This document shows, in pieces, positions 1-50,870 of a stretch of 64,000 nucleotides of DNA; position 1 is the stretch's first letter, and every line of letters begins with the position of its first letter. Both the position numbers and the translations under genes were made by a program. The DNA is taken from positions 124,001 to 188,000 of the IMG/VR virus record IMGVR_UViG_3300017763_000002. The stretch is one strand, 5' to 3'. The notes under the pieces were generated by a model that worked only from the letters and a program-made list of their open reading frames with translations, made no database searches and was not told the DNA's origin.

Positions 1-1967
1 CATACAAATCTACGCTTCCTATTGTATGGAGCAGGAGGAGTATACAAAAAAGATTTGTAACCTAAATGCGACTCTAAGAAATGTATTATTGCGTAAGCTT
101 CTTCAGCGCTTCTATTTTCAAATTTCAAAGTGAACTTCAATACATTAATATTAACTTTATTTCCGGGCAAGTATTGAGTATACGCAGAGTTATTACCAGA
201 TATTTCTATAATGTCAGGGTTATGCTGAACAGTAAATGTTGTAGATGGAAACCAGTGAAATTCTCTAGTCCATATATTTTGATTTATTGATGTAATTTTT
301 CCTGTAATAAAATGCGTGCTAATAGGCGGATCTCCTCTTGAAGTAGATTCTCCTACATGATAATAGTATCCATCATTCTCTTCTACATATACAACATCAT
401 TCTTTCTATATACTTTATCCTCGTCATATATATCAGGACGATTAACATACATATAATCATTTCTATTTAAAATGCTTGTGCTATTATTAAAAATACTTAA
501 ATTTATATTATGAACATCTTCTGTTTCTATTGTATGATCAAATTGAAAGCAATAAAATTTTCTTACTAAGTTTTCTGTATTAAGATATGGAAAAAATAAT
601 GTAGCACCATCAAGATAAAAACCTTCTATACCTTGATCATAGTCTAAAGTATATTGCCTACTTCCAGATTCTTCGTGTTGTCCTAATTTATTTTCTATAA
701 AATGAAGTATGGCATTAGCCTCTCTCGAGCTTCTGTTTGTAAAGTTTAAATCAAATGTTGCCTTTAAACTGTTTGGGCCTTTTGGTCGATGAGCTTTGTA
801 TCCGTCGCCGTATGCATTTTCTGTATTTTCTGAAGAGAATGTTACAGATGATCCGTAGTCTGGATCGAATATAAAATAATCTTTAGTCCAGTTTGCCTCG
901 AACGTATTATCTAAAAATGGATCTACATCTGGGTCTTCAACAACCTTAACTAATATTCTTAAACTTTCTGGAGTACTTATAACAGGCATTAGATCTTCCT
1001 TGGTTATTTGGTGATAGTACTCTCCGCTTGTAGAATAATGAGCAAGGACCATCACAGAATTAGTAAGCCTAGCAATAGAAAAAGTGCCCAAGATTACCTG
1101 ATTTGATCTCTGTATTTGTACGGTCTGTCCTACAGCGAAAGCGTTAACCAAAGGAGTTCCATCATTAGCATGAGTAAAGCCTGTTACGCTACGGTATATC
1201 AATGTTCCCACGTGATTTTCAACTAACGGAACATCTGGAGGATAACATTCACAATTAAAAGTCCTGTCTGTTTCGTCATTAAAATTACGAATATCTTTTT
1301 TGGCATAATAAAAACTATTACTTTCTCTGTGCCTAACTATATCAAATTTTTTATAATCATTAGCTTTACTCCAATATCCTTTATAGTTCTGAACAGAGGA
1401 TATATAATAGTTATCCGCCTCAAGTTCTCCTCCTTCTGGCGAGTCACTGATATTATCAAAATTTATTTGCTCTGTTGTTTCTGTGTTGTATAAGCCTACG
1501 CTGGTAGTTGCCCTGGTTGTGGCAGTAAATCTTTGGTTGTCAACTGAAGCTTGATCTATATTAGATTGCGAGGGGGTTAAACTTTTCTTTACCCAAAAAG
1601 CATTTTGAATTTCTAGGTTAGAACCATTAGGTCCAGTCCAATGAGTAGAGTGATACCATTGATAAGTAGTCCAATCCCCCGTCTCTGACATAAGCTGCGC
1701 AGTAATTTCAACAAGCTTGTGGCCTTCTGTTGGGTTCCAAGAGCTTGAGTCTATAACTTCTGGGGTCATGCCCCCGCTCAACACTGGCATTTGAAAGTTT
1801 TTCAGAGGGCAGCCGCTGTACCCCAAATTGTTTTTAACAGACGACACGTTTTTTGTGCATTCATAAAAACAAGTCAAATTATATCCTGCGTCATCATAAT
1901 ACGTGACGATGTCTCCAACATGATAGTTGCGCTGTGGGTTCCAAAAGCCTGTGTATTTATTACTCAT
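1..1967 (-). CDS. Minor/distal tail protein (lambda gpM-like motif), partial: runs off window start
   Basis: Not in ORF track because no stop in window. Hand translation from ATG 1967 (ATGA overlap with upstream stop): MSNKYTGFWNPQRNYHVGDIVTYY...; segments checked near 700-920 (AYGDGYKAHRPKGPNSLKATFDLNF, gpM-like) and 1-60 (YKSFLYTPPAPYNRKRRFV) are open in the same frame. Confidence 0.7.
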   Translation of the reverse strand, partial: MSNKYTGFWNPQRNYHVGDIVTYYDDAGYNLTCFYECTKNVSSVKNNLGYSGCPLKNFQMPVLSGGMTPEVIDSSSWNPTEGHKLVEITAQLMSETGDWTTYQWYHSTHWTGPNGSNLEIQNAFWVKKSLTPSQSNIDQASVDNQRFTATTRATTSVGLYNTETTEQINFDNISDSPEGGELEADNYYISSVQNYKGYWSKANDYKKFDIVRHRESNSFYYAKKDIRNFNDETDRTFNCECYPPDVPLVENHVGTLIYRSVTGFTHANDGTPLVNAFAVGQTVQIQRSNQVILGTFSIARLTNSVMVLAHYSTSGEYYHQITKEDLMPVISTPESLRILVKVVEDPDVDPFLDNTFEANWTKDYFIFDPDYGSSVTFSSENTENAYGDGYKAHRPKGPNSLKATFDLNFTNRSSREANAILHFIENKLGQHEESGSRQYTLDYDQGIEGFYLDGATLFFPYLNTENLVRKFYCFQFDHTIETEDVHNINLSIFNNSTSILNRNDYMYVNRPDIYDEDKVYRKNDVVYVEENDGYYYHVGESTSRGDPPISTHFITGKITSINQNIWTREFHWFPSTTFTVQHNPDIIEISGNNSAYTQYLPGNKVNINVLKFTLKFENRSAEEAYAIIHFLESHLGYKSFLYTPPAPYNRKRRFV

Positions 1968-2977
1968 CTTACAATTTGTGATACTGAAAACTCCCCGCTC
2001 AAATACCCTCCAGTTGAAACACTAAGACCCTGAGACATGACTTTGCCGTTGCACCCAAAAGAGGCGATATGCATTGACTCTCGTTCAGGGCCAATATACA
2101 TTGCTTGGTCTACAGCAGACATAGCTAGATATGTTGCCTCATCTATTTTTCTTTCAGGATCATTAACATTAGTATATACGTTTTCCTTTTTAGCGCCATA
2201 TAAATTAAGTTGCACAGCGATCTGTTCTGGAACTTCAGATGGATGCTGCATTTGTACAACTCCCTCGTGATTAATATAATTAATTATTTTATTTGATTTG
2301 ATATTACAATTAATTTCTATGTTACTTATTGCACTTCTGTACGGCAGAAGCCCAGTGCCAGAAAAACTTGACGCAGGCCCTTCGTTCATTCTAATACTGT
2401 AAGTTGTTCTTCTTGTAGCTTTAGCAGAATATTCTGCGCTTAACATTCTTAAATCAAATTTATTATTTTCGTCTTGTAGATCAATTCCTGTAGCGCTTAT
2501 TTCTCCATAACTCTTTAAACTCTCTGCAGGATTGACATCAGGAACTTCTGCTAACTTTTTATCTCCTATCTCATGTATAGTACCAAATATTTCATACTCA
2601 GCCTGAGCTCTGATTAATTGGAAGGGTTCCATGGTAAATGAAAAACTTGTAAGGTATGCGTTCCAGAACCTGTAGTTACCTATCCTACCCATAACTATAG
2701 AACTTTCTGTCATCGAGTTACTTATGTCAAATATTGTATGTATTGGATTAAAATGATCTTCGGAAATAATAAAATCGAAAGACAAACTTCCCTTGAGCGG
2801 CCCAGTAGGAACTAAAGTTGGATCGTTAACAGTAGCACCAACCTTATTTAAACTAAATCCATCAAACCGCACATCTCTTTTAAGTGACGGCGCCATTCTT
2901 AAGTTCGCAGCGGTTGCGTATATTTGCTGGTCGCCTAGCTCAATAAGGCATCTGTTAAAACTAGTAAACTCGCTCAT
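1964..2977 (-). CDS. Virion structural protein, tail-tube-like paralogue
   Basis: 337 aa ORF in operon with TMP; beta-strand pattern (PTGPLKGSLSFDFII) resembles 15331-16986. Confidence 0.5.
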   Translation of the reverse strand: MSEFTSFNRCLIELGDQQIYATAANLRMAPSLKRDVRFDGFSLNKVGATVNDPTLVPTGPLKGSLSFDFIISEDHFNPIHTIFDISNSMTESSIVMGRIGNYRFWNAYLTSFSFTMEPFQLIRAQAEYEIFGTIHEIGDKKLAEVPDVNPAESLKSYGEISATGIDLQDENNKFDLRMLSAEYSAKATRRTTYSIRMNEGPASSFSGTGLLPYRSAISNIEINCNIKSNKIINYINHEGVVQMQHPSEVPEQIAVQLNLYGAKKENVYTNVNDPERKIDEATYLAMSAVDQAMYIGPERESMHIASFGCNGKVMSQGLSVSTGGYLSGEFSVSQIVR

Positions 2978-3990
2978 AAACCACCAAACTTTCTTTCTTC
3001 CGACTCTGCCTGCTCTTCTTGAGTAATAAAATCGCCTTGTAGATCTGTACCATAGCTGGGAGTAGGGGTCTCGTTCTGGTAAACATCGGGGGTTCTTGGG
3101 TCGGTCTCAAAACCTACAAAGCTTAAACTGACGGTTGTTTCAGAATCTGTTTCTGAATTCTGATTTACAGATGAAATTTTAGCACGAGTAATATTATATT
3201 GATTTACAATCGTTCTGTTTTGCACAGGCTCGCCCATAGTCTCTGGGTCATATATAATTATATCTAAATTTTCTACAGCAGTTTCTATAGTATCATAATC
3301 CATCAACTCTCTCATCTGTAATATATTATAATTTTCTTGTGAGATAGTAAAATCTAATTTTGTCTCTACAGGATATATAATTTGAATGTCGTGCGCTTCA
3401 TAATCTTTTAATGTATTAACGTGTTCTTTATTTAATGCATATAACGCTTCAATGTTTAAAGTTCTATCGATAGCAAATCCAAGAATATCATAATCATTAC
3501 CACCAATTTGAACTACAATACTACCTTGTGTTGGAATTGTATAATTTCTATCTTCTTTTTCTACTTTAATTCCTTCGTATGAAGAGTTGTATCCTGGATA
3601 GCTTCCAGTAATCGCAGGAATTCCTCCGCCAAAGTTTCCGTAGACACGAATAGTATTATCGATTGTAGGAATGTCTCCAATATTACAAGCTACTCTTCTG
3701 GAAACAACCCTGCCCTTCGTAAATCCTGCTTCAAGAACTCCTTCTCCTAATACAAACCCTCCAGTAAGATCTTGATTGTCTCGCATGTTTGCGAGAATGT
3801 CAGGGCCAAGCATGTATCTTGTTATAGAAAGATCTCCTTCTACTGGCCCATTAATAAAACTATCTATGTATCCAATGCCAGCGAGGTATAATGGTTCTAC
3901 GCTAGATCCATAATTTAAAGATACAGAAGATACCCCACTAATAATTTGATCATTGATTACAAATTCTTGTTCATAACTTGAAAAACTCAT
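2974..3990 (-). CDS. Virion structural protein, tail-tube-like paralogue
   Basis: 338 aa; ISGVSSVSLNYGSSVEPLYLAG and IIYPVETKLDFTI align by eye with RVQSANYSFTINRQDVNQFG and LDFPITVNVSVSAI of 15331-16986. Confidence 0.55.
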   Translation of the reverse strand: MSFSSYEQEFVINDQIISGVSSVSLNYGSSVEPLYLAGIGYIDSFINGPVEGDLSITRYMLGPDILANMRDNQDLTGGFVLGEGVLEAGFTKGRVVSRRVACNIGDIPTIDNTIRVYGNFGGGIPAITGSYPGYNSSYEGIKVEKEDRNYTIPTQGSIVVQIGGNDYDILGFAIDRTLNIEALYALNKEHVNTLKDYEAHDIQIIYPVETKLDFTISQENYNILQMRELMDYDTIETAVENLDIIIYDPETMGEPVQNRTIVNQYNITRAKISSVNQNSETDSETTVSLSFVGFETDPRTPDVYQNETPTPSYGTDLQGDFITQEEQAESEERKFGGL

Positions 3991-38565: not shown

Positions 38566-39471
38566 ATGAGTGATGAACAATATAAATTAAGTGACGAAGA
38601 AGCCACAAGGCTTTTAAAAATTGCGGGCAGCAATTCAGACTCTGCAGAAGGCTATATTAATAAGGCAGATATTAGACTTCATGAACGACTTACTGAATTA
38701 GATCGATTAATTTATGCAGAAGATGAAGAAGATTTTTCTGACCAGCCAGAACGTGGAGATCCAGAGTGGGAAGAATGGAACGCTAGAAGATTAGAATCAA
38801 TCAATAAAGCCGATCGTGAACTCAGAGAACGCAAATTAAGATCTCAAAGAAATGAACTTCTTAAGCATACAGATTGGTTTATACAACCAGATGTAGATCT
38901 TACAGAAGAAGATAAAACTTTAGTTAAAAACTGGCGCCAGGCACTAAGAGACGCGCCAGATTCATCTGCTTGGCCTAAAGAATTGCCTTTAGCTCCAGAT
39001 GTAAAAGGAATTTATAATATTATATTAGAAGTATTTAATTTACAACCAGCAGAATCAGTTATCAAAGAACTAGAAATACCCGACGATGAAATTGTTAAAA
39101 AATTTACCAAAGGAGGAGAACAATATGATCCTGATACGTTTGAAAAATGGAAAAAATCAAGCGAAGAAAAAACCGCTGCATTTTTAGAAGAAAATAAGCC
39201 AGAAGAAGTAAAATCAAAAACTTTTAAACCTTTATTTAATACAGAAATTGTAGAAGAAAAAGAAATAGACGGGGTTAAATGTTGTTTAAATAAAGATGGC
39301 GTTTGGGTCACTGCCGGGGAAATAGAGTCTTCAAAAAAATACGAAGAAAAATATAAAGCAGAACCTAAACCCAAACGGGCTAGAGATGAAGACGGAAAAT
39401 TTATTCCTGACGATCCAGAGACTCCAGACCACAACGAAGCCTGGGAAGGCGGCAAAGCTCCCGAAAAATAA
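38566..39471 (+). CDS. Tail fibre assembly chaperone domain protein
   Basis: LRSQRNELLKHTDWFIQPDV...WRQALRDAP (Phage_tail_APC-like); C-terminal RARDEDGKFIPDDPETPDHNEAW. Confidence 0.7.
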   Translation: MSDEQYKLSDEEATRLLKIAGSNSDSAEGYINKADIRLHERLTELDRLIYAEDEEDFSDQPERGDPEWEEWNARRLESINKADRELRERKLRSQRNELLKHTDWFIQPDVDLTEEDKTLVKNWRQALRDAPDSSAWPKELPLAPDVKGIYNIILEVFNLQPAESVIKELEIPDDEIVKKFTKGGEQYDPDTFEKWKKSSEEKTAAFLEENKPEEVKSKTFKPLFNTEIVEEKEIDGVKCCLNKDGVWVTAGEIESSKKYEEKYKAEPKPKRARDEDGKFIPDDPETPDHNEAWEGGKAPEK

Positions 39472-39474
39472 TGC

Positions 39475-39503
39475 TTGACAAATCTTTACTTATATAGTAA
39501 AGT
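39475..39503 (+). promoter_or_regulatory. sigma70-type promoter, leaderless
   Basis: TTGACA-17-TAAAGT, ATG 6 nt downstream. Confidence 0.7.
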
Positions 39504-39509
39504 TAAAAT

Positions 39510-40049
39510 ATGTCAGACTTATTATACAAAACAAAAACATATCTTGTTGGGCATATGCAATATCTCTCTGGTAGAAACTGGAGAGAAGAAGTAACTGAAA
39601 AATTACAACCGTTGAATATAACCTGCTTTGATCCATACAAAAAGCCTTTCATGAAAGATGTCGAAGAAGATGAAGCATCTAGACAAGAAATGGAAACATG
39701 GATGCGTACAAAACAATACGATCGAGTTACAGACAGAATGAAAACAGTACGTTCTTACGATTTAAATCTTGTTGATAGAAGTGATTTTATTATTGCTCAT
39801 CTAGTTCCAGATGTAGCTTCTTGGGGCAGCGCAGAAGAGATTGTTACGGCGGTACGCATGAAGAAGCCTGTCTTTATTAGCATGGAAGGGGGTAAAGCAA
39901 AGACCCCTCTTTGGATGCTAGGAATGCTTCCTCACAAATTTATATATAATAGTCTTGACGAAATTATAGAAATGTTGTATGCTATTAATAATGGAAACAA
40001 AGAAATCGATTCAGATAGATGGAGACTTTTACGAAAGGAATTTAGATGA
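39510..40049 (+). CDS. Nucleoside 2-deoxyribosyltransferase-like protein
   Basis: TYLVGHM...WREEV...CFDPY...DLNLVDRSDFIIAHL...SWGSAEEI...MKKPV. Confidence 0.8.
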   Translation: MSDLLYKTKTYLVGHMQYLSGRNWREEVTEKLQPLNITCFDPYKKPFMKDVEEDEASRQEMETWMRTKQYDRVTDRMKTVRSYDLNLVDRSDFIIAHLVPDVASWGSAEEIVTAVRMKKPVFISMEGGKAKTPLWMLGMLPHKFIYNSLDEIIEMLYAINNGNKEIDSDRWRLLRKEFR

Positions 40050-40210
40050 TTGAAATACTAGCAACATTGCCAGACAAAGAGTACATCTCTTTTTTCACAG
40101 GAGACTGGCTTGTATTTTCTATTGTAGGTGGCATCGTATGGGCTTATAAAGATAAATTTAAATTCAACCTCAGTGGTAGAGAAGAAGAGGACGAATGGCG
40201 TCATTTTTAA
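40046..40210 (+). CDS. Small membrane protein
   Basis: Hand-translated 54 aa, below track cut-off: MIEILATLPDKEYISFFTGDWLVFSIVGGIVWAYK...; overlaps both neighbours. Confidence 0.5.
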   Translation: MIEILATLPDKEYISFFTGDWLVFSIVGGIVWAYKDKFKFNLSGREEEDEWRHF

Positions 40211-41166
40211 CTGACATTGTAAGACTACCTTATCTTGAGAAGCCAACTCAAGAAGAGTTTTTAAATATCAGATCTAATCCAGCAGTATTTAAAAACGCCA
40301 TAGAGAATAAGAATGCATTAAATCTTACATTTGATAAAATCAAAAATGAAATATCAGATGTAGATATTAAACTCAGGCGATCTTTATGCAACAAGTCTGA
40401 GCGCATAATGACTACGCTGCATACATATGTAGATTATATTTTAAATCATCAGCCGCTAACAAATTGTTATGCAGAAAACCCAATGACAGGAGAGGCATCC
40501 TTTCATGACTATACAATTGAAGACAAACTTTATTGTTTAGAAATGGACGCAAATTATGATCCCGAGCTGGCCAAGTTCTTTTCTTGTCCTAGTTTTATGG
40601 GGGACTGGTATGACAAATATTTACCACTAATGAAAAGATCCGTGCTAGAAGGCAAGCGGCACACATGGTTTTTTATTGGCCCAGAAGATACTTTAAGTGA
40701 GTTGCACACAGACCACGATTCAATCCACACAACTATACAACAATGCGACGGCAAGAAAAGGTTTTTTATTATTAAGCCCGAAGAGCAAATTTGGTTAGAA
40801 GGCAGGCATTCTGAAGAAGTTATAGAGTCAGTAAGATTTGAAATCCTGAACGACAAACTTTCGGTGTCTTCAATTCTAAACAATAAAGAATCTGAAGCGA
40901 TCCTTAAAGACCTTCAAACAATACAAATCCATGTTAACGATTTAGTGCGTGGAGATGTAATATATATACCATCCATGACGGGGCACTGCGCTGTTAGTTT
41001 AACAAACTCAATCGGAGTTAGTAGAGATTTTATAGATGATACAAACATAGACAAGTATTTATTTTCGTGCCTTTTTTCCAGTCAAGTGTTTGAAGTAGCT
41101 CACAATATTATTCCTTACCCTCTATTACAAAATTTACAAAATGAATATGAAAGCATTAAAGTATAA
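40195..41166 (+). CDS. JmjC/cupin Fe(II)-2OG oxygenase
   Basis: WFFIGPEDTLSELHTD (HxD), DGKKRF, GDVIYIPSMTGH (distal His). Confidence 0.85.
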   Translation: MASFLTDIVRLPYLEKPTQEEFLNIRSNPAVFKNAIENKNALNLTFDKIKNEISDVDIKLRRSLCNKSERIMTTLHTYVDYILNHQPLTNCYAENPMTGEASFHDYTIEDKLYCLEMDANYDPELAKFFSCPSFMGDWYDKYLPLMKRSVLEGKRHTWFFIGPEDTLSELHTDHDSIHTTIQQCDGKKRFFIIKPEEQIWLEGRHSEEVIESVRFEILNDKLSVSSILNNKESEAILKDLQTIQIHVNDLVRGDVIYIPSMTGHCAVSLTNSIGVSRDFIDDTNIDKYLFSCLFSSQVFEVAHNIIPYPLLQNLQNEYESIKV

Positions 41167-42112
41167 CGACATTTGTTTAATAGCTAATTATAGCGAATTG
41201 TTTAGTCGCTCAGACGCAGACACAGAGATCGAATTGTTTGGCGAGAAGTATAAATTGCCAGTGATGCCTGCGAATATGAAATCAGTTATAGATATGCATA
41301 TTGCAAAATGGATGAGTGAAAATAATTATTTTTATATTATGCATAGATTTGATAATGATCTTAAAGATGTCGTCTCACAAATGAATGACGAAAATTGGGA
41401 AACTATATCGGTGAGCATGGGAATTAAAATAAATGACAAAAAAGACGTAGTTGCTCTTGCAAAATACAAACAAAGAGTTGATTATATAACTATTGATATT
41501 GCTCACGGACATTGCAGCAGAATGAAGTCAGCTATCGATTGCATTAAAAAATTTATGCCTAAGACTAGAATTATTGCCGGCAATGTGTCAACTCCTACTG
41601 CTGTAAGAGATTTAGCTTCTTGGGGTGCAGATATAGTTAAAGTTGGCATTGGTCAAGGCTCGCCTTGCACAACAAAAGACAAGACAGGGTTTACAATGCC
41701 TATGTTTAGTTGCGTTCAATGGTGCGCCAATGAATTTGTTGATGATGATGGAGATTCTATACCCATCATAGCAGATGGTGGTGTTAAATGTAATGGAGAC
41801 ATTGCTAAAGCTCTAGTCGCTGGAGCAAAAATGGTTATGTCTGGAGGTATGTTTGCAGCTTGTACAGACAGTCCAGCAGCGACAAGCGTAGTAAATAATG
41901 TTCCCTATAAAGCCTATTTTGGTTCGGCCAGCGCAGAGAATAAAGGGCATAATAATCATATTGAAGGCAAGCTCACTAATGTTGTAACTAACAGCATGTC
42001 TTATGAAGAAAAGTTAAATGAAATTCAGCAAGACCTGCAGAGTGCCATTTCATACGCAGGAGGTAGTAATTTAAATGCCTTAAACTATGTAGATTATGAG
42101 CGTGTCGATTAA
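41141..42112 (+). CDS. guaC: GMP reductase
   Basis: PVMPANM, IDIAHGH, IAGNV, VKVGIGQGSPCTT, IIADGG, YFGSAS, DLQSAISYAGG. Confidence 0.92.
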   Translation: MNMKALKYNDICLIANYSELFSRSDADTEIELFGEKYKLPVMPANMKSVIDMHIAKWMSENNYFYIMHRFDNDLKDVVSQMNDENWETISVSMGIKINDKKDVVALAKYKQRVDYITIDIAHGHCSRMKSAIDCIKKFMPKTRIIAGNVSTPTAVRDLASWGADIVKVGIGQGSPCTTKDKTGFTMPMFSCVQWCANEFVDDDGDSIPIIADGGVKCNGDIAKALVAGAKMVMSGGMFAACTDSPAATSVVNNVPYKAYFGSASAENKGHNNHIEGKLTNVVTNSMSYEEKLNEIQQDLQSAISYAGGSNLNALNYVDYERVD

Positions 42113-42581
42113 TGTTGTAAAAGTTGAAGACGAATCAGAATCTAAAAGGCTGATTAGGTTGGCGCTACTATCGGACGCTTTGCCTTTTTCGTTTATTGAC
42201 ACAGCCCAGAACATAGAAAGGTTTTATAGCTTTGATGTTAGGCCCGCAATCCTCAACCAAGACCCTGTCTTATTTTGCAGTGTTAATGGAAAAAATGTTG
42301 GAATGAGTTGCGTATCAACTTGTATGAGCAAAATTTATGAACTGCAAGAGCCTTTAGCAATAGGAATTTTTACTTTCGTTCAAGAATCTTTCAGAAAGCG
42401 TGGCCTCGCTTACCAAATGCATGTAAAAGCTCTTGACATGCTTAAAAAAGACGGTTACAATAAAGTAATAGGAGAAATTATGAATAAAAATCAAGACTCA
42501 CTAAATAGCTGCAATTACCTATCCAAAGAAACAGGTATAGATTTTAACATTTACAGCACAAGATATGAATGTAAAATATAA
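42096..42581 (+). CDS. GNAT-family acetyltransferase
   Basis: FVQESFRKRGLA acetyl-CoA motif; NQDS motif B. Confidence 0.7.
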   Translation: MSVSINVVKVEDESESKRLIRLALLSDALPFSFIDTAQNIERFYSFDVRPAILNQDPVLFCSVNGKNVGMSCVSTCMSKIYELQEPLAIGIFTFVQESFRKRGLAYQMHVKALDMLKKDGYNKVIGEIMNKNQDSLNSCNYLSKETGIDFNIYSTRYECKI

Positions 42582-43206
42582 TTTTCTAGATACGGTTTGG
42601 CGTTACGCCCAAGATGATGATGCTAAAATATTACCTAAAAACCCTAGGGTCTTAGAGCTGCTGAATTGTGTCTGTGAGATATTTATCGAGTTCCCTAACG
42701 ACGAAATTGAACCTCCTAGCTCTTGCGTTATGGCTTTAGCTGCTAACTCTGGCGCAAGTTTCTCTGGAGCGGCCTCGGCCTCCCTAAACTGCATCACAGA
42801 TCAGCATTTACTACTAGAAAGAATAGCAGATTTCATTGAAGATAATTTTAATAACACTTACTCAAAAGTTATTGATGAAAATAAAATCATTCCAGGATTT
42901 GGACACCCATCAATCAAGGGAGAGGATGATAGAGTAAACTTTTTACTGAAAGAGTTTGATGATTTATGTGGCCCTAGAGTTAACTTTTGTAGATATATTG
43001 AAGTAAGACTTCCCGTCAAAATGAATATCGGTTCAGCTATAGCGTCTCTTCTGCTGGATAACGACATCAAGAAAGAATATATATTATATTTTCCTCTAAT
43101 AGGAAGGTTATTTGGTTGGAATAAAATTTATAATTCAGTAAAAAATAATTTCCCAAAAGTTGTTCCCTCCAACGAGCTAACAAGCTCTTATGCTTCTTCT
43201 GAATGA
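42565..43206 (+). CDS. Citryl-CoA lyase/citrate synthase-like small protein
   Basis: EPPSS..ALAANSGA, IPGFGHP...DDRV, MNIG, IGRLFGW. Confidence 0.7.
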   Translation: MNVKYNFLDTVWRYAQDDDAKILPKNPRVLELLNCVCEIFIEFPNDEIEPPSSCVMALAANSGASFSGAASASLNCITDQHLLLERIADFIEDNFNNTYSKVIDENKIIPGFGHPSIKGEDDRVNFLLKEFDDLCGPRVNFCRYIEVRLPVKMNIGSAIASLLLDNDIKKEYILYFPLIGRLFGWNKIYNSVKNNFPKVVPSNELTSSYASSE

Positions 43207-43660
43207 CATTTTAGAATTAGAATCTATGGTTCCGCAAGATTTTGCGGCGTATAATGTATATGATTCTATGTTACAGAAGAATTCTTTTATAGATGGATTG
43301 GCAAAAAAAATATGTCACGAGTTTTCTATAAATCAAAGTAATTTGGGGGTGATTGTAAATAGTTTTCTTACTCACGGTTTACCTCTAGGGCCGCATGATT
43401 ATAAAACTCACTATGATCGCTCAATTAACCAACATTGGATTTATTTTTGCACCCGATCCCAAATAGTTAAAGGAGGAGAGATGATAATGCTAGAAGATGA
43501 TCCTTCGTTTGATTTATTTGATAAACCTACAGATTATAAACAATATTCTATAGAACATAACAAACTAATACAAATTGGGCCAGCAGTAAAAAGATTATTT
43601 AATTCAATTTCTGCTTGTAGTTATCCTGTTTTTCATATAAACTTATATACTTATGACTAA
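43190..43660 (+). CDS. 2OG-Fe(II) oxygenase-like protein, possibly degenerate
   Basis: THYD (HxD) and KGGE motifs; no clear distal His. Confidence 0.4.
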   Translation: MLLLNDILELESMVPQDFAAYNVYDSMLQKNSFIDGLAKKICHEFSINQSNLGVIVNSFLTHGLPLGPHDYKTHYDRSINQHWIYFCTRSQIVKGGEMIMLEDDPSFDLFDKPTDYKQYSIEHNKLIQIGPAVKRLFNSISACSYPVFHINLYTYD

Positions 43661-44327
43661 AAATTTACTTTCTATTGATATTGATTATTGCCTACATGCA
43701 AATGATATTGTAGATTTATTTGACATACTAACATCTAAATGTGTTAATGTTGACGAAGATAAAATATTATTTAGTCAGTATCATATTGATGTATTAGATT
43801 TAATAAAAAAAATTCATCACCCATTATCAATTTATAATGTTGATTTGCATCATGACATTTTTTATGAAAACCAAACCTCAATTGCAGAAGTAAAATCAGG
43901 AGTAGTAAGTTCTGCGGATTGGGTATTGTGGTGTCTACTAAACAAAAGAGTAGAGAGTTATACTTGGATCAAACAACACAACTCTGAAGAATTTTCTGAG
44001 GACATGCTAGAACTATTTAACAAAGCGTCAAACCATGAAGATAACTATGGCATTGTAGACTCTAGAAACGTTGTATTTTCTAGCAAGAAAGCTTTTGCTC
44101 ATAAGCGTGACGAAAATTTTATCAAACAGAAGCCAAAAATTTTTACAGAGACCAGAGCTCTACAAAGTTTACAAAATTTAGATTTTGATTATATATTTGT
44201 ATGCTTGTCGCCAGACTACACACCCAAAGAAAATTTTTTCTTGTATGATTTATGCAAGCTAGGAGTCGAGAGAATTATTGAAAATCGAAATATCGTAAAA
44301 AAAATCCGAGAAGGGGTTGAGCTGTAG
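43653..44327 (+). CDS. UPF0489-like (arginase/deacetylase fold) metallo-hydrolase
   Basis: LLSIDIDY, NVDLHHDIFY, ADWV, FVCLSPDYTP. Confidence 0.65.
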   Translation: MTKNLLSIDIDYCLHANDIVDLFDILTSKCVNVDEDKILFSQYHIDVLDLIKKIHHPLSIYNVDLHHDIFYENQTSIAEVKSGVVSSADWVLWCLLNKRVESYTWIKQHNSEEFSEDMLELFNKASNHEDNYGIVDSRNVVFSSKKAFAHKRDENFIKQKPKIFTETRALQSLQNLDFDYIFVCLSPDYTPKENFFLYDLCKLGVERIIENRNIVKKIREGVEL

Positions 44328-45115
44328 TGGACTATATACAAAGTGAAATAGAAAATTGCTTTAAAGAAGATATATTTAAAGTTTTCGCGAAAAATTCTCA
44401 GCAAATGAAAATTATGCACAGATCGCTAGACGGAATTGGTGTGAATTACAATAAAAAACAAATAACTAAAGTAAAAGCATATTGTAAAATATTAGATTAT
44501 TTTCCAAAGTTTTCAGATGAGTTTTTAAATTCTTTTTTATTTAATATCGAAGAAAGGCGAGTGTTTTTTAATTTTTGTGACAGCCACTCAGAGTGTTTAC
44601 TAGATCGCTCTACTGGGCTTTCGGGATTTAATTTATCCGTAAAAAAAGATATGACAACTGGAAAGATAACAAGATCAATATATTTAAAAAAAGATAAAAT
44701 GCGCACGGTCTTACTTAACTTTGAAGATAATATATCTTATTCTAAATACTTTTATGTATTTTCTCCCAGTTGGGTGAGTTTTTTATCTCGCATGTTTGGT
44801 GCGCCACAGCACGAGCACGGGCTAGAGCTCTCTATAAAAGACTTCAACGCATTTGCCACCATATACCCTCAGTTTTCATTTAAGTCCGTTTTAAAGCCCT
44901 CAAGCATGAGGTTTTCATTTAACGATTTTTTCTACAATTTAAGCAAGCACAAACCATGGAACATAGAAGACGAGATATTATTATATTTCTATAACAACAA
45001 CACATATTTAAGACCTATAACTAAAGGTTACGGATTACTAGGAGACAATAGAAAAATATATATTGGAGCTTTTTCTTATAAACATTCTGCTTTCAAAAAT
45101 TTTATAACAAATTAA
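44327..45115 (+). CDS. Hypothetical protein
   Basis: 262 aa GTG-start ORF, last gene of the overlapping enzyme operon. Confidence 0.55.
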   Translation: MDYIQSEIENCFKEDIFKVFAKNSQQMKIMHRSLDGIGVNYNKKQITKVKAYCKILDYFPKFSDEFLNSFLFNIEERRVFFNFCDSHSECLLDRSTGLSGFNLSVKKDMTTGKITRSIYLKKDKMRTVLLNFEDNISYSKYFYVFSPSWVSFLSRMFGAPQHEHGLELSIKDFNAFATIYPQFSFKSVLKPSSMRFSFNDFFYNLSKHKPWNIEDEILLYFYNNNTYLRPITKGYGLLGDNRKIYIGAFSYKHSAFKNFITN

Positions 45116-45410
45116 TTATTTTTTCAAAATTATGATATCCAATTTTTCTAACTTTTACGTTACCCTTGAGCAGTTTATTAAACTTATACCTTATAACAAA
45201 TCCATCTTCTTTGCCATAGGATACAATTTCTTTGACGAAATCATAAGCTCCCCTAGACTTTAACCATTTATAATAAAAATCCTTCATGTCTTTTTCGCAT
45301 TCAAGTATCACTTCTCTATCTTTAAATACGCTTGCATACAAGGTTATGTCTCTGAATAATGTTGTTTCAGAGGGCGGTTCGCAAAGTATTCCATCTATAA
45401 TAAGAAGCAT
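45102..45410 (-). CDS. Hypothetical protein (HAD-like N-terminus)
   Basis: Start reassigned to ATG 45410 (MLLIIDGIL), 10 nt after GTGTA. Confidence 0.5.
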   Translation of the reverse strand: MLLIIDGILCEPPSETTLFRDITLYASVFKDREVILECEKDMKDFYYKWLKSRGAYDFVKEIVSYGKEDGFVIRYKFNKLLKGNVKVRKIGYHNFEKIINLL

Positions 45411-45436
45411 TATTATTAAATACACAAAAAAAATGC

Positions 45437-45465
45437 TTGACTTTTGCATGAAAATTTCGTATACT
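45437..45465 (+). promoter_or_regulatory. sigma70-type promoter
   Basis: TTGACT-17-TATACT, ATG 8 nt downstream. Confidence 0.75.
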
Positions 45466-45473
45466 TTATAACA

Positions 45474-45767
45474 ATGGATAATACATCAAATAATAACTCA
45501 GAGTGGCGTGACAGAGAGCTAGGAGCTCTTTGGGTGCGTCAAGGCAAGGGACAAAAGTATCTTACTGGTCACTTGGAAATCGAAACTATGCCTGGCGTTA
45601 ACGAAAAAGTTAAAGTCGTGGTATTTTCTAACAAAGGAAAGCAAAAGAACGAAAACGCCCCAGATTACGTGGTCTATCGCTCTCAGCCCGCTCAAGACTC
45701 AGCAGCAGAAGCTACAACTTCTACAGCAGAGGCAACTTCTAACGAACTTCCAGAAGCTTTAGTGTAA
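45474..45767 (+). CDS. DUF736-like protein
   Basis: ELGALW...KYLTGHL...VVFSN...NENAPDYVVY; start at 45474 by promoter position. Confidence 0.65.
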   Translation: MDNTSNNNSEWRDRELGALWVRQGKGQKYLTGHLEIETMPGVNEKVKVVVFSNKGKQKNENAPDYVVYRSQPAQDSAAEATTSTAEATSNELPEALV

Positions 45768-45775
45768 TGTTTCTT

Positions 45776-46138
45776 GGGGGTGTTTTGGATTCGATTGTTA
45801 TTTGAAAGTTTTAGTGCAGTACGAAGAGATGCCTGGCTTCGTTAAAAGGCATAAAGAAATAAATGCTAAAAACATTGTTTCGTTCGAGGACTTCGTTCAT
45901 AGCGAAGAACTCGCTCTTGCAGCTTAGAGCTGCACCTCTTGTTAATGGACGCAGATAAATTATCAAGGGGTCATCAATCTGCAAAAACAGACCAAAGGTT
46001 TGCTTGTTCATAAACTGAAAATAATTGTAACAAGACGTTAGATGTTTATATCCCAACGTTAAAAAAAATAAACTATTACTGTAGACCTAATTCCGAATAA
46101 TCAACAAGACGCGGGTTCAAATCCCGCCACCTCCACCA
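45776..46138 (+). ncRNA. ssrA: tmRNA; tag (A)AKNIVSFEDFVHSEELALAA
   Basis: 5' GGGGGTG pairs with CACCTCC-A-CCA 3' including the G3:U70 wobble; T-arm GCGGG-TTCAAAT-CCCGC; tag ORF 45865-45927 ends ALAA. Confidence 0.95.
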
Positions 46139-46818: not shown

Positions 46819-47023
46819 AGTGCCTTCTAAAGAAATCTCCGTCTTCGCTGTGACAAAAAACGGCAGAAGATACGAAGATGTAAATTATATCTCTAGAGAA
46901 TCTGCGTTGAAAAAAATTGAACAAATTAAATCTTCTATGCAAAAATCTAAAGGCCATTTTATGAAACAAAGTTTTGTAAGATTTGATATTGTCGAAACCC
47001 AGAAACCAAACAAAGTTTGGTAG
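46778..47023 (+). CDS. Hypothetical protein
   Basis: 81 aa; true start uncertain. Confidence 0.4.
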   Translation: MQKLQSQIKLLKSKVPSKEISVFAVTKNGRRYEDVNYISRESALKKIEQIKSSMQKSKGHFMKQSFVRFDIVETQKPNKVW

Positions 47024-47028
47024 GGTTA

Positions 47029-47535
47029 ATGGAAAAACAAAACCTATCTCAGTTTTCTTTTTTTGAACTAGCTAATCGAAGAAAATATAGAATCGAAAAA
47101 TCTAGTAACGAACATATAAAGCTCGGTGTTGACTTCTACGTTCATGGAAAATACCAAAAAACCCAAAGAGAAGTTAAAATGTTATTTGCGGTTAAACGCA
47201 GAAAAAACAAGCAGAGCTCTACTTATCATGACCGTTGGATTTGGATAGAATATAAAAAGCACAAAAACCAAGAAGGCTGGATTTACGGGCCTTCGCATTT
47301 TGTCGCTTTTGAAAGATCTAAAGATTTTTTAATTATTAATCGCAAAGTGTTGCTTGATTACTTAAATAGTAATAAATGCAAAGTGCGATGGGATAAACCT
47401 TTTGTTCCAGAGCCCAAGGATGCAAAGTACAGGATATATCAAAATCCTAAAAACGGATCGCAAATTTGTCAAATATTAGCAAAAGATATTCTCAAGCTTA
47501 AAGGAGTTGCAATATGGCTAAAAAACGGGGAATAA
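47029..47535 (+). CDS. Putative PD-(D/E)xK-like phage nuclease
   Basis: GVDFYV...WIWIEY...EGWIYGPSHFVAFE; family recognised by eye only. Confidence 0.4.
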   Translation: MEKQNLSQFSFFELANRRKYRIEKSSNEHIKLGVDFYVHGKYQKTQREVKMLFAVKRRKNKQSSTYHDRWIWIEYKKHKNQEGWIYGPSHFVAFERSKDFLIINRKVLLDYLNSNKCKVRWDKPFVPEPKDAKYRIYQNPKNGSQICQILAKDILKLKGVAIWLKNGE

Positions 47536-47955
47536 ATGAAGATAAAATTTAAAAAATTAGATCAACTTGCAGATATACCAAACTACGCCCAAGCAGGAGA
47601 TGCTGGAATGGATTTAAAAGCCGTTTCACTGACTGCGCTCGCTGGTTTCTGGGAGTATGGAACAGGTTTAGCCTTAGAGATTCCATTAGGATACGTAGGG
47701 CTTGTTTTCCCTCGTTCAAGCATATCCAAGACAGATCATTCACTAAGGAACTCTGTAGGGGTCATAGACGCAGGCTATCGAGGTGAAATCAAACTGAGAA
47801 TGAGCTCGCCTGTTTTAGGCTCAGATTGTTACGGAATTGGAGATAGAATTGGGCAGTTATTAATTTTAAAATTGCCTTGGGTAGAAATAGAAGAAGTGAA
47901 AGAATTATCGCCCACCTCCAGAGGTGAAGGCGGTTTTGGCAGCACTGGAAAATAA
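47536..47955 (+). CDS. dut: Trimeric dUTPase
   Basis: All five motifs: AGMDL, PRSS, GVIDAGYRGEI, GDRIGQL, RGEGGFGSTG. Confidence 0.97.
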   Translation: MKIKFKKLDQLADIPNYAQAGDAGMDLKAVSLTALAGFWEYGTGLALEIPLGYVGLVFPRSSISKTDHSLRNSVGVIDAGYRGEIKLRMSSPVLGSDCYGIGDRIGQLLILKLPWVEIEEVKELSPTSRGEGGFGSTGK

Positions 47956-49454: not shown

Positions 49455-49499
49455 TATTTTTCATGGAATATTTTTGTGTTCATATGTGTAATACTGAAT

Positions 49500-50870
49500 A
49501 TGACCTCAAATGAAAAACAACTTAACTGTTCCTGCGAAAAAATGATTCCAATTTTGTTATCTAAAGTTACTGATTTAGAACGAGAAATTATGAATTTAAA
49601 AAAAGACGAAATTAAAGTTATTCCAGAAGTTGTACAAAAAAGTAAAGTTGCTGTTATTGCTTGGCAGTTTCCCAACAGATCAAACACATTCATTGTTAGT
49701 GAAATGATGGAGTTACATCGCGCGGGTATAGACATTACAATATACAGTTTAAGCAAGCCGACAGCAGAGTGCGAAGAAATATATAAAGAAGAGCTCAAAG
49801 TGCTTAGGGAGAAAATTATTAATATTCCTGAATTAAGATTGCTTGATTATAAGGCTGCCAAAGACAACCAAATACCTTTTTTTAGAAATTATTATAGACA
49901 AACTCTTGAGCTTTGCAAAACAATTGATCCTTCTTCTGAAAATAATTATAACCAACAAGAACAAGAGGCGGTGCAAAATTCAAAAGGTTTTTTAAAAGAT
50001 TTAATTAAACACATTCAAGACTCAGGAGTCAATAAAATATACGCTCCCTTTGCTGGCGGAGATGCAGAGAAAGCCATGATGATATCTTATCACACTGGAA
50101 TACCTTATTATTTTACAGCGCATGCATTTGATTTATTTTCAAGCTACTATTACCAAAGAATGAAAGCTAAAACAGTAGAGCATGTTTTTGTTATTTCTGA
50201 ATACAACAAAAAGTACATGATAGAAAACTTAGGAATGCCAGAAGAAAAAATTACAGTTCGTAGAGTTAATTTTCTGGCTCCAGACGAAAAAAATATTAAA
50301 AGCAAAGATTTAGGTGTGAAATATATTTTTAGTGCAGGCAGGCTTGACGAAATGAAAGGTTATGAATATTCTATTAAAGCTTTTGCTGAGTTTCATAAAA
50401 TCTTCCCAGATGTTTATTATTTAATTGTTGGCAGTGGAGATCTGGAGCTTAGTTTGAAACAATTAGTAAAAGATTTAAAGCTTGAAGGCTTCGTTCATTT
50501 TTTGGGACACGTATCAAATCACACTGTTTTAGAGTTCGCGAAAGACGCAGAATTCTCTATTTTAAGCTCTATAGAAACAAATGATAAAGACAAAGAGGGT
50601 TTGCCCACTTGTTTTGTTGAAAGTATGTCCCTGGGCACGCCCTGCATAGGAACAGACTATTCTGGCGTCCCAGAGTTAATTGATCATGGAGTCAACGGCA
50701 TGCTTGCAAAACAAAAAGATATTCAAGATATTACTTCTAAAATGACACAGCTTTACAAAATGATTGAAAATGATCGGAGCGGCGAAATATCAAAGTCTTG
50801 TAAGATAAAAATTACAACAATGTTTGACAATCAAAAGAATATTAATTTACTAGTAAATCATTTAAAATGA
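49500..50870 (+). CDS. Glycosyltransferase family 4 (WcaL-like)
   Basis: FPNRSNTFIVSE, FTAHAFDLF, AGRLDEMKG, EGLPTCFVESMSLGTPCIGT; start ATG 49500 is 9 nt after GTGTA. Confidence 0.9.
   Translation: MTSNEKQLNCSCEKMIPILLSKVTDLEREIMNLKKDEIKVIPEVVQKSKVAVIAWQFPNRSNTFIVSEMMELHRAGIDITIYSLSKPTAECEEIYKEELKVLREKIINIPELRLLDYKAAKDNQIPFFRNYYRQTLELCKTIDPSSENNYNQQEQEAVQNSKGFLKDLIKHIQDSGVNKIYAPFAGGDAEKAMMISYHTGIPYYFTAHAFDLFSSYYYQRMKAKTVEHVFVISEYNKKYMIENLGMPEEKITVRRVNFLAPDEKNIKSKDLGVKYIFSAGRLDEMKGYEYSIKAFAEFHKIFPDVYYLIVGSGDLELSLKQLVKDLKLEGFVHFLGHVSNHTVLEFAKDAEFSILSSIETNDKDKEGLPTCFVESMSLGTPCIGTDYSGVPELIDHGVNGMLAKQKDIQDITSKMTQLYKMIENDRSGEISKSCKIKITTMFDNQKNINLLVNHLK

Follow-up and report, generated by a model that had tools for sequence, protein, structure and literature searches.

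The locus considered here raises the question of whether a run of closely packed genes in an uncultured jumbo phage encodes a single pathway and, if so, what this pathway may modify. The genes are located on the plus strand of a 64,000-nt stretch of DNA (the window), which represents bases 124001–188000 of the IMG/VR record IMGVR_UViG_3300017763_000002 (204,906 bp, complete by CheckV). At positions 39510–45115 of the window, a chain of open reading frames (ORFs) was found that consists of an NDT-like gene, a small ORF and seven further ORFs at 40195–45115. In a first-pass annotation made from the letters of the sequence, the seven ORFs were described as one enzyme operon, possibly an undescribed modification pathway, and not as unrelated auxiliary genes. 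Comparison with related loci shows that the genes at 40046–45115 form a discrete optional island of an uncultured marine jumbo phage clade, which behaves as one insertion/deletion unit. The core of the island comprises the genes of a small membrane peptide, a GNAT N-acyltransferase, a citryl-CoA-lyase-like (CCL-like) protein and a protein with the predicted fold of PT-barrel prenyltransferases (PT); the window contains its fullest version.

The comparison set included approximately 45 related loci, and the IMG/VR loci (n = 20) were recovered by scanning with the CCL-like profile. In all 20 IMG/VR loci, the gene order runs from the NDT-like gene through the small peptide gene to the PT-barrel gene and then, wherever the downstream flank was recovered, to a conserved flanking gene, g107 (45444–45767). 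Three versions of the island were distinguished. The shortest (9 of 20 loci) contains only the genes of the small peptide, GNAT, CCL-like and PT-barrel proteins; the second (8 loci) additionally contains the GMP reductase gene, guaC; and the third, found in the remaining 3 loci, in the window and in about ten other assemblies, has eight genes owing to the addition of JmjC, 2-oxoglutarate oxygenase-like (2OG-like) and UPF0489-like genes. Each of the three versions is represented by other assemblies as well. Neither in the 20 IMG/VR loci nor in some 15 other assemblies were the four core genes found apart. The JmjC gene is placed apart from the genes of the 2OG-like and UPF0489-like proteins, yet the three occur only as a complete set or not at all. 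In a maximum-likelihood tree of GNAT, CCL-like and PT sequences (24 loci; midpoint root for drawing only), the eight-gene form constituted one group (one change), which is compatible with one origin.

Synteny across related phages had been proposed as a check in the first-pass annotation, and gene order and close spacing proved to be kept to about 30% identity (homologous marine contigs retain those of the whole block down to 29–34% protein identity). In the relatives L023–L027, the NDT-like gene (89% identical) is directly followed by the g107 homologue with no island genes between them; therefore, the block from the small ORF to the PT-barrel gene is an optional island in a conserved slot. 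The slot between the NDT-like gene and g107 is itself variable, and other relatives have UvdE and APS kinase genes nearby. Thus, the view that these are not random auxiliary genes was borne out, whereas the grouping of the seven genes into one set holds in part: the four core genes stay together, the JmjC, 2OG-like and UPF0489-like genes are lineage-specific, and guaC is facultative.

The coordinates and the overlaps of 1–26 nt given earlier for the seven genes, which follow the NDT-like gene and the small ORF, were reproduced exactly. The NDT-like gene (39510–40049) overlaps the small ORF (40046–40210) by 4 nt (ATGA, stop on start), and the subsequent overlaps are 16 nt (small ORF/JmjC), 26 nt (JmjC/GuaC), 17 nt (GuaC/GNAT), 17 nt (GNAT/CCL-like), 17 nt (CCL-like/2OG-like), 8 nt (2OG-like/UPF0489-like) and 1 nt (UPF0489-like/PT-barrel). 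Short overlaps are frequent elsewhere in the same phage, for example the 4-nt overlaps at 1964–3990 and 50867, so the tight packing is real, yet it is no evidence by itself for shared function. The ratio of nonsynonymous to synonymous substitutions (dN/dS) was calculated against a close relative, L029 (191.7-kb Tara scaffold; dS 0.18–1.36). For all nine genes from the NDT-like to the PT-barrel gene it was 0.03–0.08, that is, strong purifying selection, indicating real genes under constraint.

The last gene of the island (44327–45115, plus strand, GTG start) belongs to the invariant core and encodes a protein of 262 aa, which had been listed as unknown. Structure prediction has refined this assignment: the AlphaFold model (pLDDT 91.8, pTM 0.90) has ten strands and shows the ABBA fold, and the Foldseek probability is 1.00. 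According to the VIA search, the model is similar to more than 50 solved PT-barrel enzymes (Z from 14.5 to 10.8). All of the top ten matches are prenyltransferases of peptides that are ribosomally made and modified after translation (RiPPs), namely, DciF, KgpF, PirF, PatF, PagF and LimF (Z 13.5–14.5, root-mean-square deviation ~3.9 Å, 210–219 residues aligned), and small-molecule ABBA and DMATS enzymes follow with Z of 10.8–12.2. The product of this gene is thus confidently predicted to have the ABBA/PT-barrel prenyltransferase fold. The residues K50, K54, K106, Y119, Y141, Y143, E167, Y180, K233, Y235, R242 and K243 are invariant in the family, and these Lys, Arg, Tyr and Glu residues occupy alternate positions of the barrel strands. 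The sequence gave no Pfam match at E ≤ 0.1 (PTase_Orf2, Trp_DMAT and DUF5838) and no PHROG match, and an exhaustive profile search of 1.84 billion proteins returned only its own family (20 representative clusters).

Two other core genes encode proteins of CoA-thioester enzyme families, and the second is always located directly 3′ of the first. The GNAT N-acyltransferase (161 aa; 42096–42581, plus strand) matches PF00583 with 23 bits (cut-off 20.7). The R-x-x-G motif for acyl-CoA (R100 and G103) is invariant in 10 homologues, and its profile matches in the PDB include N-alpha-acetyltransferases. The CCL-like protein (213 aa; 42565–43206, plus strand) corresponds to the C-terminal part of citrate synthase. 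Its family profile matches citryl-CoA lyase 6hxp (E 3e-11) and the CCL modules of ATP-citrate lyase (ACLY; E 1e-10) in the PDB. The motif PG(F/M)GHPSI with His114, the catalytic-loop His, as well as D121 and R123, are invariant. The scores are below the curated cut-offs, being 26.8 vs. 27 for Pfam Citrate_synt and 30.7 vs. 245 for the NCBIfam CCL family.

The fourth core gene, which is the first gene of the island (40046–40210, plus strand), encodes a small single-pass membrane peptide of 54 aa, a candidate substrate or membrane anchor. The peptide was found in all island versions, being ~40 aa long in its shorter forms and up to ~55 aa. The N-terminus is conserved (MIEILA..SY.EFF.GD[F/W]) and is followed by a hydrophobic stretch of ~15 residues, a basic segment and an acidic tail. 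In most versions the tail ends in aromatic residues (..DDFYGK; ..DEWRHF in the window copy). The dN/dS of this short gene is 0.043.

The three genes added in the eight-gene version encode proteins of 323, 156 and 224 aa, respectively. The first (40195–41166, plus strand), found only in this version, is a JmjC/Cupin_8 Fe(II)/2-oxoglutarate hydroxylase (Cupin_8 47.4 bits, cut-off 27.4), in which the iron triad H171, D173 and H264 and the 2OG-binding K188 are invariant in 19 homologues. Among solved structures, the arginyl hydroxylase JMJD5 is closest to it (E 3e-5). JmjC-only hydroxylases act mostly on protein residues. The names of JmjC, GMP reductase, GNAT and CCL-like proteins given in the first-pass annotation were upheld by the profile scans and PDB matches; those of the two other added proteins could be retained in part.

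The 2OG-like protein (43190–43660, plus strand) has no Pfam match and is assigned by its fold. The Atlas model (pTM 0.82) has the expected double-stranded beta-helix fold, with TM-scores of 0.69–0.72 to the 2OG-FeII_Oxy_3/5 and AlkB clusters. The HxD/E...H triad is not conserved among the seven homologues, in which only D25, N57, F59, G67, G95, G96 and P146 are invariant; L018 lacks H69, and the position after it holds D, N or S. With a dN/dS of 0.053, this protein, judged by its model, is a degenerate or atypical member of the 2OG-oxygenase fold. The third protein (43653–44327, plus strand) is a putative UPF0489-like metallohydrolase of the arginase superfamily. Its PF12640 match is weak (18.9 bits, below the cut-off of 27), with E ~0.002 in 4 of 8 homologues. 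The model (pLDDT 76.5) yielded nothing at E ≤ 1e-3 in Foldseek, and arginases came up only in the exhaustive VIA search, where the peptide arginase OspR (8brp, Z 7.8, 149 residues) ranked first among 48,161 chains and 13 of the top 20 chains were ureohydrolases (Z 5–5.8). Invariant residues are D9, D11, H44, D46, D64, H66, H67 and D68. Thus, the arginase DxHxD motif is retained as D64-L-H66-H67-D68 (DLHHD), the DIDLD-like motif is represented by S7-I-D9-I-D11-Y without the third Asp, and the EEHxE-like motif by Q-Y-H44-x-D46. PF12640 has been described as a peptide-arginase family (PMC12703449). In the biphenomycin pathway, the UPF0489 arginase BipC operates with the JmjC ornithine hydroxylase BipG and the alpha-ketoglutarate hydroxylase BipH (PMC12707348).

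The remaining member of the island, guaC (41141–42112, plus strand), encodes a predicted type 2 GMP reductase of 323 aa. The protein is similar to NF003966 (E 4e-102; 341.7 bits, which is 2.3 short of the equivalog cut-off of 344) and was aligned over its full length with the GMP reductase of B. anthracis (1YPF, E 1e-77). In this alignment, the catalytic C-x-T loop (GSPCTTK) and the EGK motif are retained. The first-pass annotation had allowed that guaC could be an independent insertion, and this proved justified. The gene is missing from 9 of 20 IMG/VR islands and from L022, and its distribution implies at least three changes on well-supported branches of the GNAT+CCL+PT tree; being absent from about half of the islands, it is dispensable. 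Its treatment as part of the invariant core, derived from L013 and L014, was overturned by the wider IMG/VR sample. Most likely, the GMP reductase is a separate element that would convert G to A nucleotides for an AT-rich genome (33–37% GC), near a dUTPase and, in relatives, a dCMP deaminase.

What, then, may the core do? For the PT-barrel, UPF0489-like and JmjC proteins, the closest characterized relatives all act on side chains of peptides or proteins, and tailoring of a peptide or protein is therefore favored. Quite possibly, though by no means certainly, the island encodes a lipidation pathway dependent on acyl-CoA and prenyl diphosphate, in which host acyl-CoA and host prenyl diphosphate would be used to acylate and prenylate a peptide or protein. 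No polyprenyl synthase was found when sought in the phage genome, which would leave the host as the source of prenyl donors. The GNAT and the CCL-like protein would act together, the latter making, trimming or presenting the CoA thioester, and transfer of the prenyl group would fall to the PT-barrel protein. The sole dedicated candidate substrate would be the small membrane peptide, its acidic, mostly aromatic-ended tail being a possible acceptor site. In the eight-gene version, the added enzymes might deguanidinate arginine to ornithine and hydroxylate it, as in biphenomycin maturation. The product could serve in membrane remodelling, exclusion of competing phages, counter-defence, or modification of virion or host proteins. 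More specifically, it is proposed tentatively that the orphan PT-barrel proteins, together with GNAT and CCL-like proteins, prenylate and acylate the phage membrane peptide or a host or virion protein, with arginine-to-ornithine conversion and hydroxylation in some lineages.

A number of observations weigh against peptide or protein lipidation. The substrate class is inferred from fold neighbors at 6–15% identity. The PT family profile found nothing among PDB sequences, leaving the protein without a sequence link to known prenyltransferases. The OspR match of the UPF0489-like protein (Z 7.8) is only middling, and we know of no role of a citryl-CoA-lyase-like protein in peptide tailoring. The small peptide looks transmembrane and not like a classical leader–core precursor. 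No Arg that could serve the arginase-like and JmjC enzymes is conserved in its alignment, and the predicted complex with the PT-barrel protein scored 0.02, which is evidence neither way. Pfam, NCBIfam and PHROG scans of the island and its neighbors revealed no RiPP recognition element, leader protease or exporter. Scanning of GTDB genomes with PT and CCL-like profiles detected no cellular counterpart of the cluster, the sole match being a weak citrate-synthase-like one in a Terriglobia metagenome-assembled genome (MAG). Finally, the conserved gene order is partly due to common descent, given that the loci all belong to a single broad phage lineage.

The same enzymes could instead act on a free metabolite, such as an arginine/ornithine-type guanidino compound, an amino acid, or an aromatic or purine base, to give a prenylated and N-acylated signal, chelator or toxin, with the small peptide serving only as an anchor or exporter. 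Such small-molecule tailoring is conceivable but rather doubtful. ABBA prenyltransferases as a class act mostly on small aromatics (and match the model with the lower Z range given above), GNAT and citrate-synthase-like proteins are ordinary small-molecule enzymes, most arginase-fold matches are small-molecule ureohydrolases, and a precursor-like peptide with a conserved Arg is lacking. However, the best matches of the PT-barrel and UPF0489-like proteins belong to peptide-acting subfamilies, the nearest JmjC relative acts on arginyl residues, and family scans revealed no scaffold-forming enzyme (nonribosomal peptide synthetase, polyketide synthase or ligase) in or beside the island. It is unlikely that the genes are independent auxiliary cargo of a variable slot, kept together by descent and compact packing. 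The variability of the slot, the repeated gain or loss of guaC, the origin of all loci from one phage lineage, and the lone GMP reductases of unrelated phages (Bacillus phage G, XacN1, Cr30 and Mel-JY01) fit this explanation; the constant association of the four core genes despite 27–30% identity, the occurrence of the PT and CCL-like families almost exclusively in the island context, and the perfect co-variation of three added genes at two positions do not.

Hypermodification of a nucleobase, DNA or tRNA, in which GuaC and the NDT-like protein would make or exchange a modified purine and the other enzymes would decorate it, appears decidedly improbable. In its favor are the near-equivalog GMP reductase inside the island, the translationally coupled NDT-like gene directly upstream, and the dUTPase (in relatives, also dCMP deaminase) 2–3 kb downstream; moreover, GMP-reductase homologues act on 7-deazapurine nucleotides in the toyocamycin and tubercidin pathways. 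However, many relatives have the NDT-like gene but no island, and about half of the islands lack guaC, so that neither of these inconstant partners defines the pathway, and no precedent is known for the invariant GNAT, CCL-like and PT-barrel proteins in the modification of DNA or tRNA bases. Searches of the phage genome for TGT/DpdA and deoxynucleoside kinase found neither; together with the peptide-modifying nearest relatives, this makes DNA/tRNA hypermodification the weaker branch of the modification pathway suggested in the first-pass annotation, and its peptide or small-molecule branch the stronger one. Least plausible of all, with very little probability, is a rewiring of host carbon and nitrogen metabolism by auxiliary genes adapted to nitrogen-poor seawater, where GuaC would free NH3 and the arginase-like protein urea, the JmjC and 2OG-like proteins would use 2-oxoglutarate, and the CCL-like protein would yield acetyl-CoA and oxaloacetate. 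The marine origin of the contigs agrees with this, and several of the enzymes touch guanidino/amidine groups or tricarboxylic acid cycle intermediates; nevertheless, it is the enzymes releasing nitrogen that are dispensable, no catalytic triad is conserved in the 2OG-like protein, and the invariant PT-barrel protein, GNAT and small peptide would be left unexplained.

The source phage is an uncultured jumbo phage with a GC content of 31–42%; the standard genetic code suffices for its genes, and the majority of its proteins have no PHROG family match. When INPHARED phages were searched at the DNA level and by tblastn using the island and the JmjC protein as queries, neither a resembling region nor a JmjC relative was found. 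Single-sequence scans of IMG/VR with the JmjC and PT proteins also gave nothing, and profile searches were needed to find relatives. Contigs with related islands originate from marine metagenomes (Tara and JGI samples), and L013 from a single-cell assembly; the sole hint of the host comes from a Flavobacteriia MAG, into which one NDT-like homologue was binned. In the literature, no account was found of an ABBA/PT-barrel prenyltransferase, peptide arginase and JmjC hydroxylase as a phage-borne unit. Thus, the island is real, narrowly distributed and undescribed, and brings known enzyme families into a new combination centered on a PT-fold protein that is an orphan in sequence.

The NDT-like gene (39510–40049, plus strand), which the first-pass annotation had placed under one promoter with the seven genes, is found without the island in relatives and hence is only its neighbor. 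The number of metagenome clusters at 90% identity is 1811 for the NDT-like protein vs. ~26 for the PT protein and 24 for JmjC. The NDT-like/YtoQ-like protein (179 aa) matches PF15891 marginally (30.8 bits, cut-off 30), and its closest solved relative is YtoQ (E 0.08). Its identity is 85–97% at all loci, including those where neighboring genes have diverged to ~30%; 125 of 179 residues are invariant among 7 diverse sequences, and dN/dS is 0.035–0.05. INPHARED contains one distant match, a lone gene of a 595-kb uncultured phage with unrelated neighbors. For a large group of marine phages, the NDT-like gene appears to be a hallmark.

Upstream of this gene, a promoter-like site, TTGACA-17-TAAAGT, is located at 39475–39503 (plus strand, 10 of 12 matches). 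This is where the first-pass annotation had placed the promoter. Such matches are not commoner across the region than in shuffled sequences (29 vs. 31.3), so the match alone proves nothing, whereas 7 of 8 aligned relatives share TTGACA at this position without change; L013, the remaining one, has TTGATT in this column and TTGAC a few bases upstream. The site probably serves the NDT-like gene and, via read-through, the island. It is overlapped by a 7-bp palindrome or hairpin (CTTTACT/AGTAAAG with a 5-nt loop; 39484–39502, plus strand) situated between the −35 element and the NDT-like start, with compensatory changes in 4 of 7 stem pairs across 8 relatives. This inverted repeat might function either as a palindromic operator or as a hairpin in the 5′ RNA.

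Tail-fibre genes lie 5′ of the island, and genes encoding a dUTPase, Holliday-junction endonuclease, glycosyltransferase and sulfotransferase are located 3′ of it. The C-terminus of a tail-fibre-assembly-like protein (Phage_tail_APC, 38566–39471) carries the motif PKRAR(D)..GKF..DDP.TPD(H/Y)NEAWEGGKAP (39376–39468, plus strand), which in L006 and L009 is encoded by a separate 62-aa ORF. It was detected at no fewer than 381 IMG/VR loci, mostly in ORFs of 90–150 aa on unrelated small contigs. The idea that this Arg-rich upstream peptide (PKRAR..DDP.TP..NEAWEGGKAP) is a substrate dedicated to the JmjC and arginase-like enzymes was rejected: at least 381 loci have it, and the island is present in 2 of the best 80.

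On the other side, a convergent gene (45102–45449, minus strand) overlaps the 3′ end of the PT-barrel gene by 14 nt. It encodes a protein of 115 aa with a hydrophobic signal/transmembrane-like N-terminus and no family match in the scans. The gene accompanies all eight-gene islands and two five-gene ones (L014 and L129), being absent from the remaining four- and five-gene islands and from relatives without the island. A tmRNA is encoded at 45776–46138 (plus strand), ~660 nt 3′ of the island (Rfam RF00023, 139.8 bits, gathering threshold 47, full-length model; ARAGORN tag peptide AKNIVSFEDFVHSEELALAA). Further downstream, g172 (47017–47535) abuts the dUTPase gene (47536–47955) with no deaminase between them; in relatives, a dCMP deaminase gene is found between the g172 homologue and dUTPase (L002, 15340–16186). 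At 49476–51754 (plus strand), a GT1-family glycosyltransferase gene (E 8e-33) is followed by a sulfotransferase-like gene with a 4-nt overlap; the corresponding region of relatives contains GT25, GT90 and Sulfotransfer_2 genes, or APS kinase. These genes suggest a second, separate glycan/sulfation module. In addition, a tRNA-Thr(TGT) gene (55633–55708, plus strand) lies just 5′ of a transposase-like ORF (56484–57812, plus strand; phrog_506, E 3e-19, C-terminal part only).

Should the island lipidate a peptide or protein, this would be a new kind of chemistry by which phages act on host cells or on components of their own. It would also be the first virus-encoded prenylation system of the RiPP-like type, provide a compact prenyltransferase family that is an orphan in sequence, and perhaps give the citryl-CoA-lyase fold a new use, with a citrate-synthase-fold protein supplying or handling the acyl donor. 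ABBA/PT-barrel prenyltransferases, peptide arginases and JmjC hydroxylases are known from natural-product pathways of bacteria and fungi. The four-, five- and eight-gene versions constitute a natural deletion series. The annotation is also to be corrected in that the NDT-like gene and GMP reductase should not define a nucleotide-modification pathway at this locus.

Among known systems, the predicted phage GMP reductase resembles the bacterial type 2 GuaC (1YPF) and stand-alone phage GuaC proteins over its full length and retains the catalytic residues; unlike the stand-alone phage genes, guaC is here embedded in a tailoring island and yet dispensable. The CCL-like protein is homologous to citryl-CoA lyase and the CCL module of ATP-citrate lyase (6hxp, 6hxn and 6qcl) over ~180 residues and retains the catalytic-loop His of the G-x-G-H motif and the D-P-R motif. 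It is shorter (213 aa vs. 260–280 aa), and this predicted lyase has no partner citryl-CoA synthetase, being instead always paired with GNAT. The genes added in the eight-gene version are predicted to belong to the same three enzyme families as BipC, BipG and BipH of biphenomycin biosynthesis and may also be compared with OspR of landornamide; the arginase-type DxHxD motif is retained in the UPF0489-like protein. In contrast to BipC, the phage protein matches UPF0489 below the cut-off, and in contrast to BipH, the phage 2OG-fold protein has no iron triad. Unlike the biphenomycin cluster, the island has no genes for MNIO, radical-SAM or TldD protease proteins and no precursor with a conserved Arg.

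The best structural neighbors of the PT-barrel protein are the cyanobactin-type F-family prenyltransferases, with ~215 residues aligned. Both have a ten-stranded PT-barrel of similar size (262 aa in the phage vs. ~280–300 aa); invariant Lys, Arg, Tyr and Glu are found at strand positions of the phage protein. The phage protein is 6–10% identical to the F-family, with no detectable sequence similarity. Unlike the cyanobactin enzymes, it is phage-encoded, and its gene has a different neighborhood, in which no cyanobactin protease or heterocyclase gene is found. Uncharacterized proteins of cyanomyophages (Synechococcus phage ACG-2014e A0A0E3HAV3, S-CAM1 and S-CAM3), likewise viral and marine, are weakly PT-barrel-like: no sequence relation to the phage PT was found, whereas the BFVD search with its model matched them with Foldseek E of 2e-3 to 0.1 and TM-scores of 0.36–0.45. 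Marine phages may thus encode prenyltransferase-fold proteins more often than their annotation shows.

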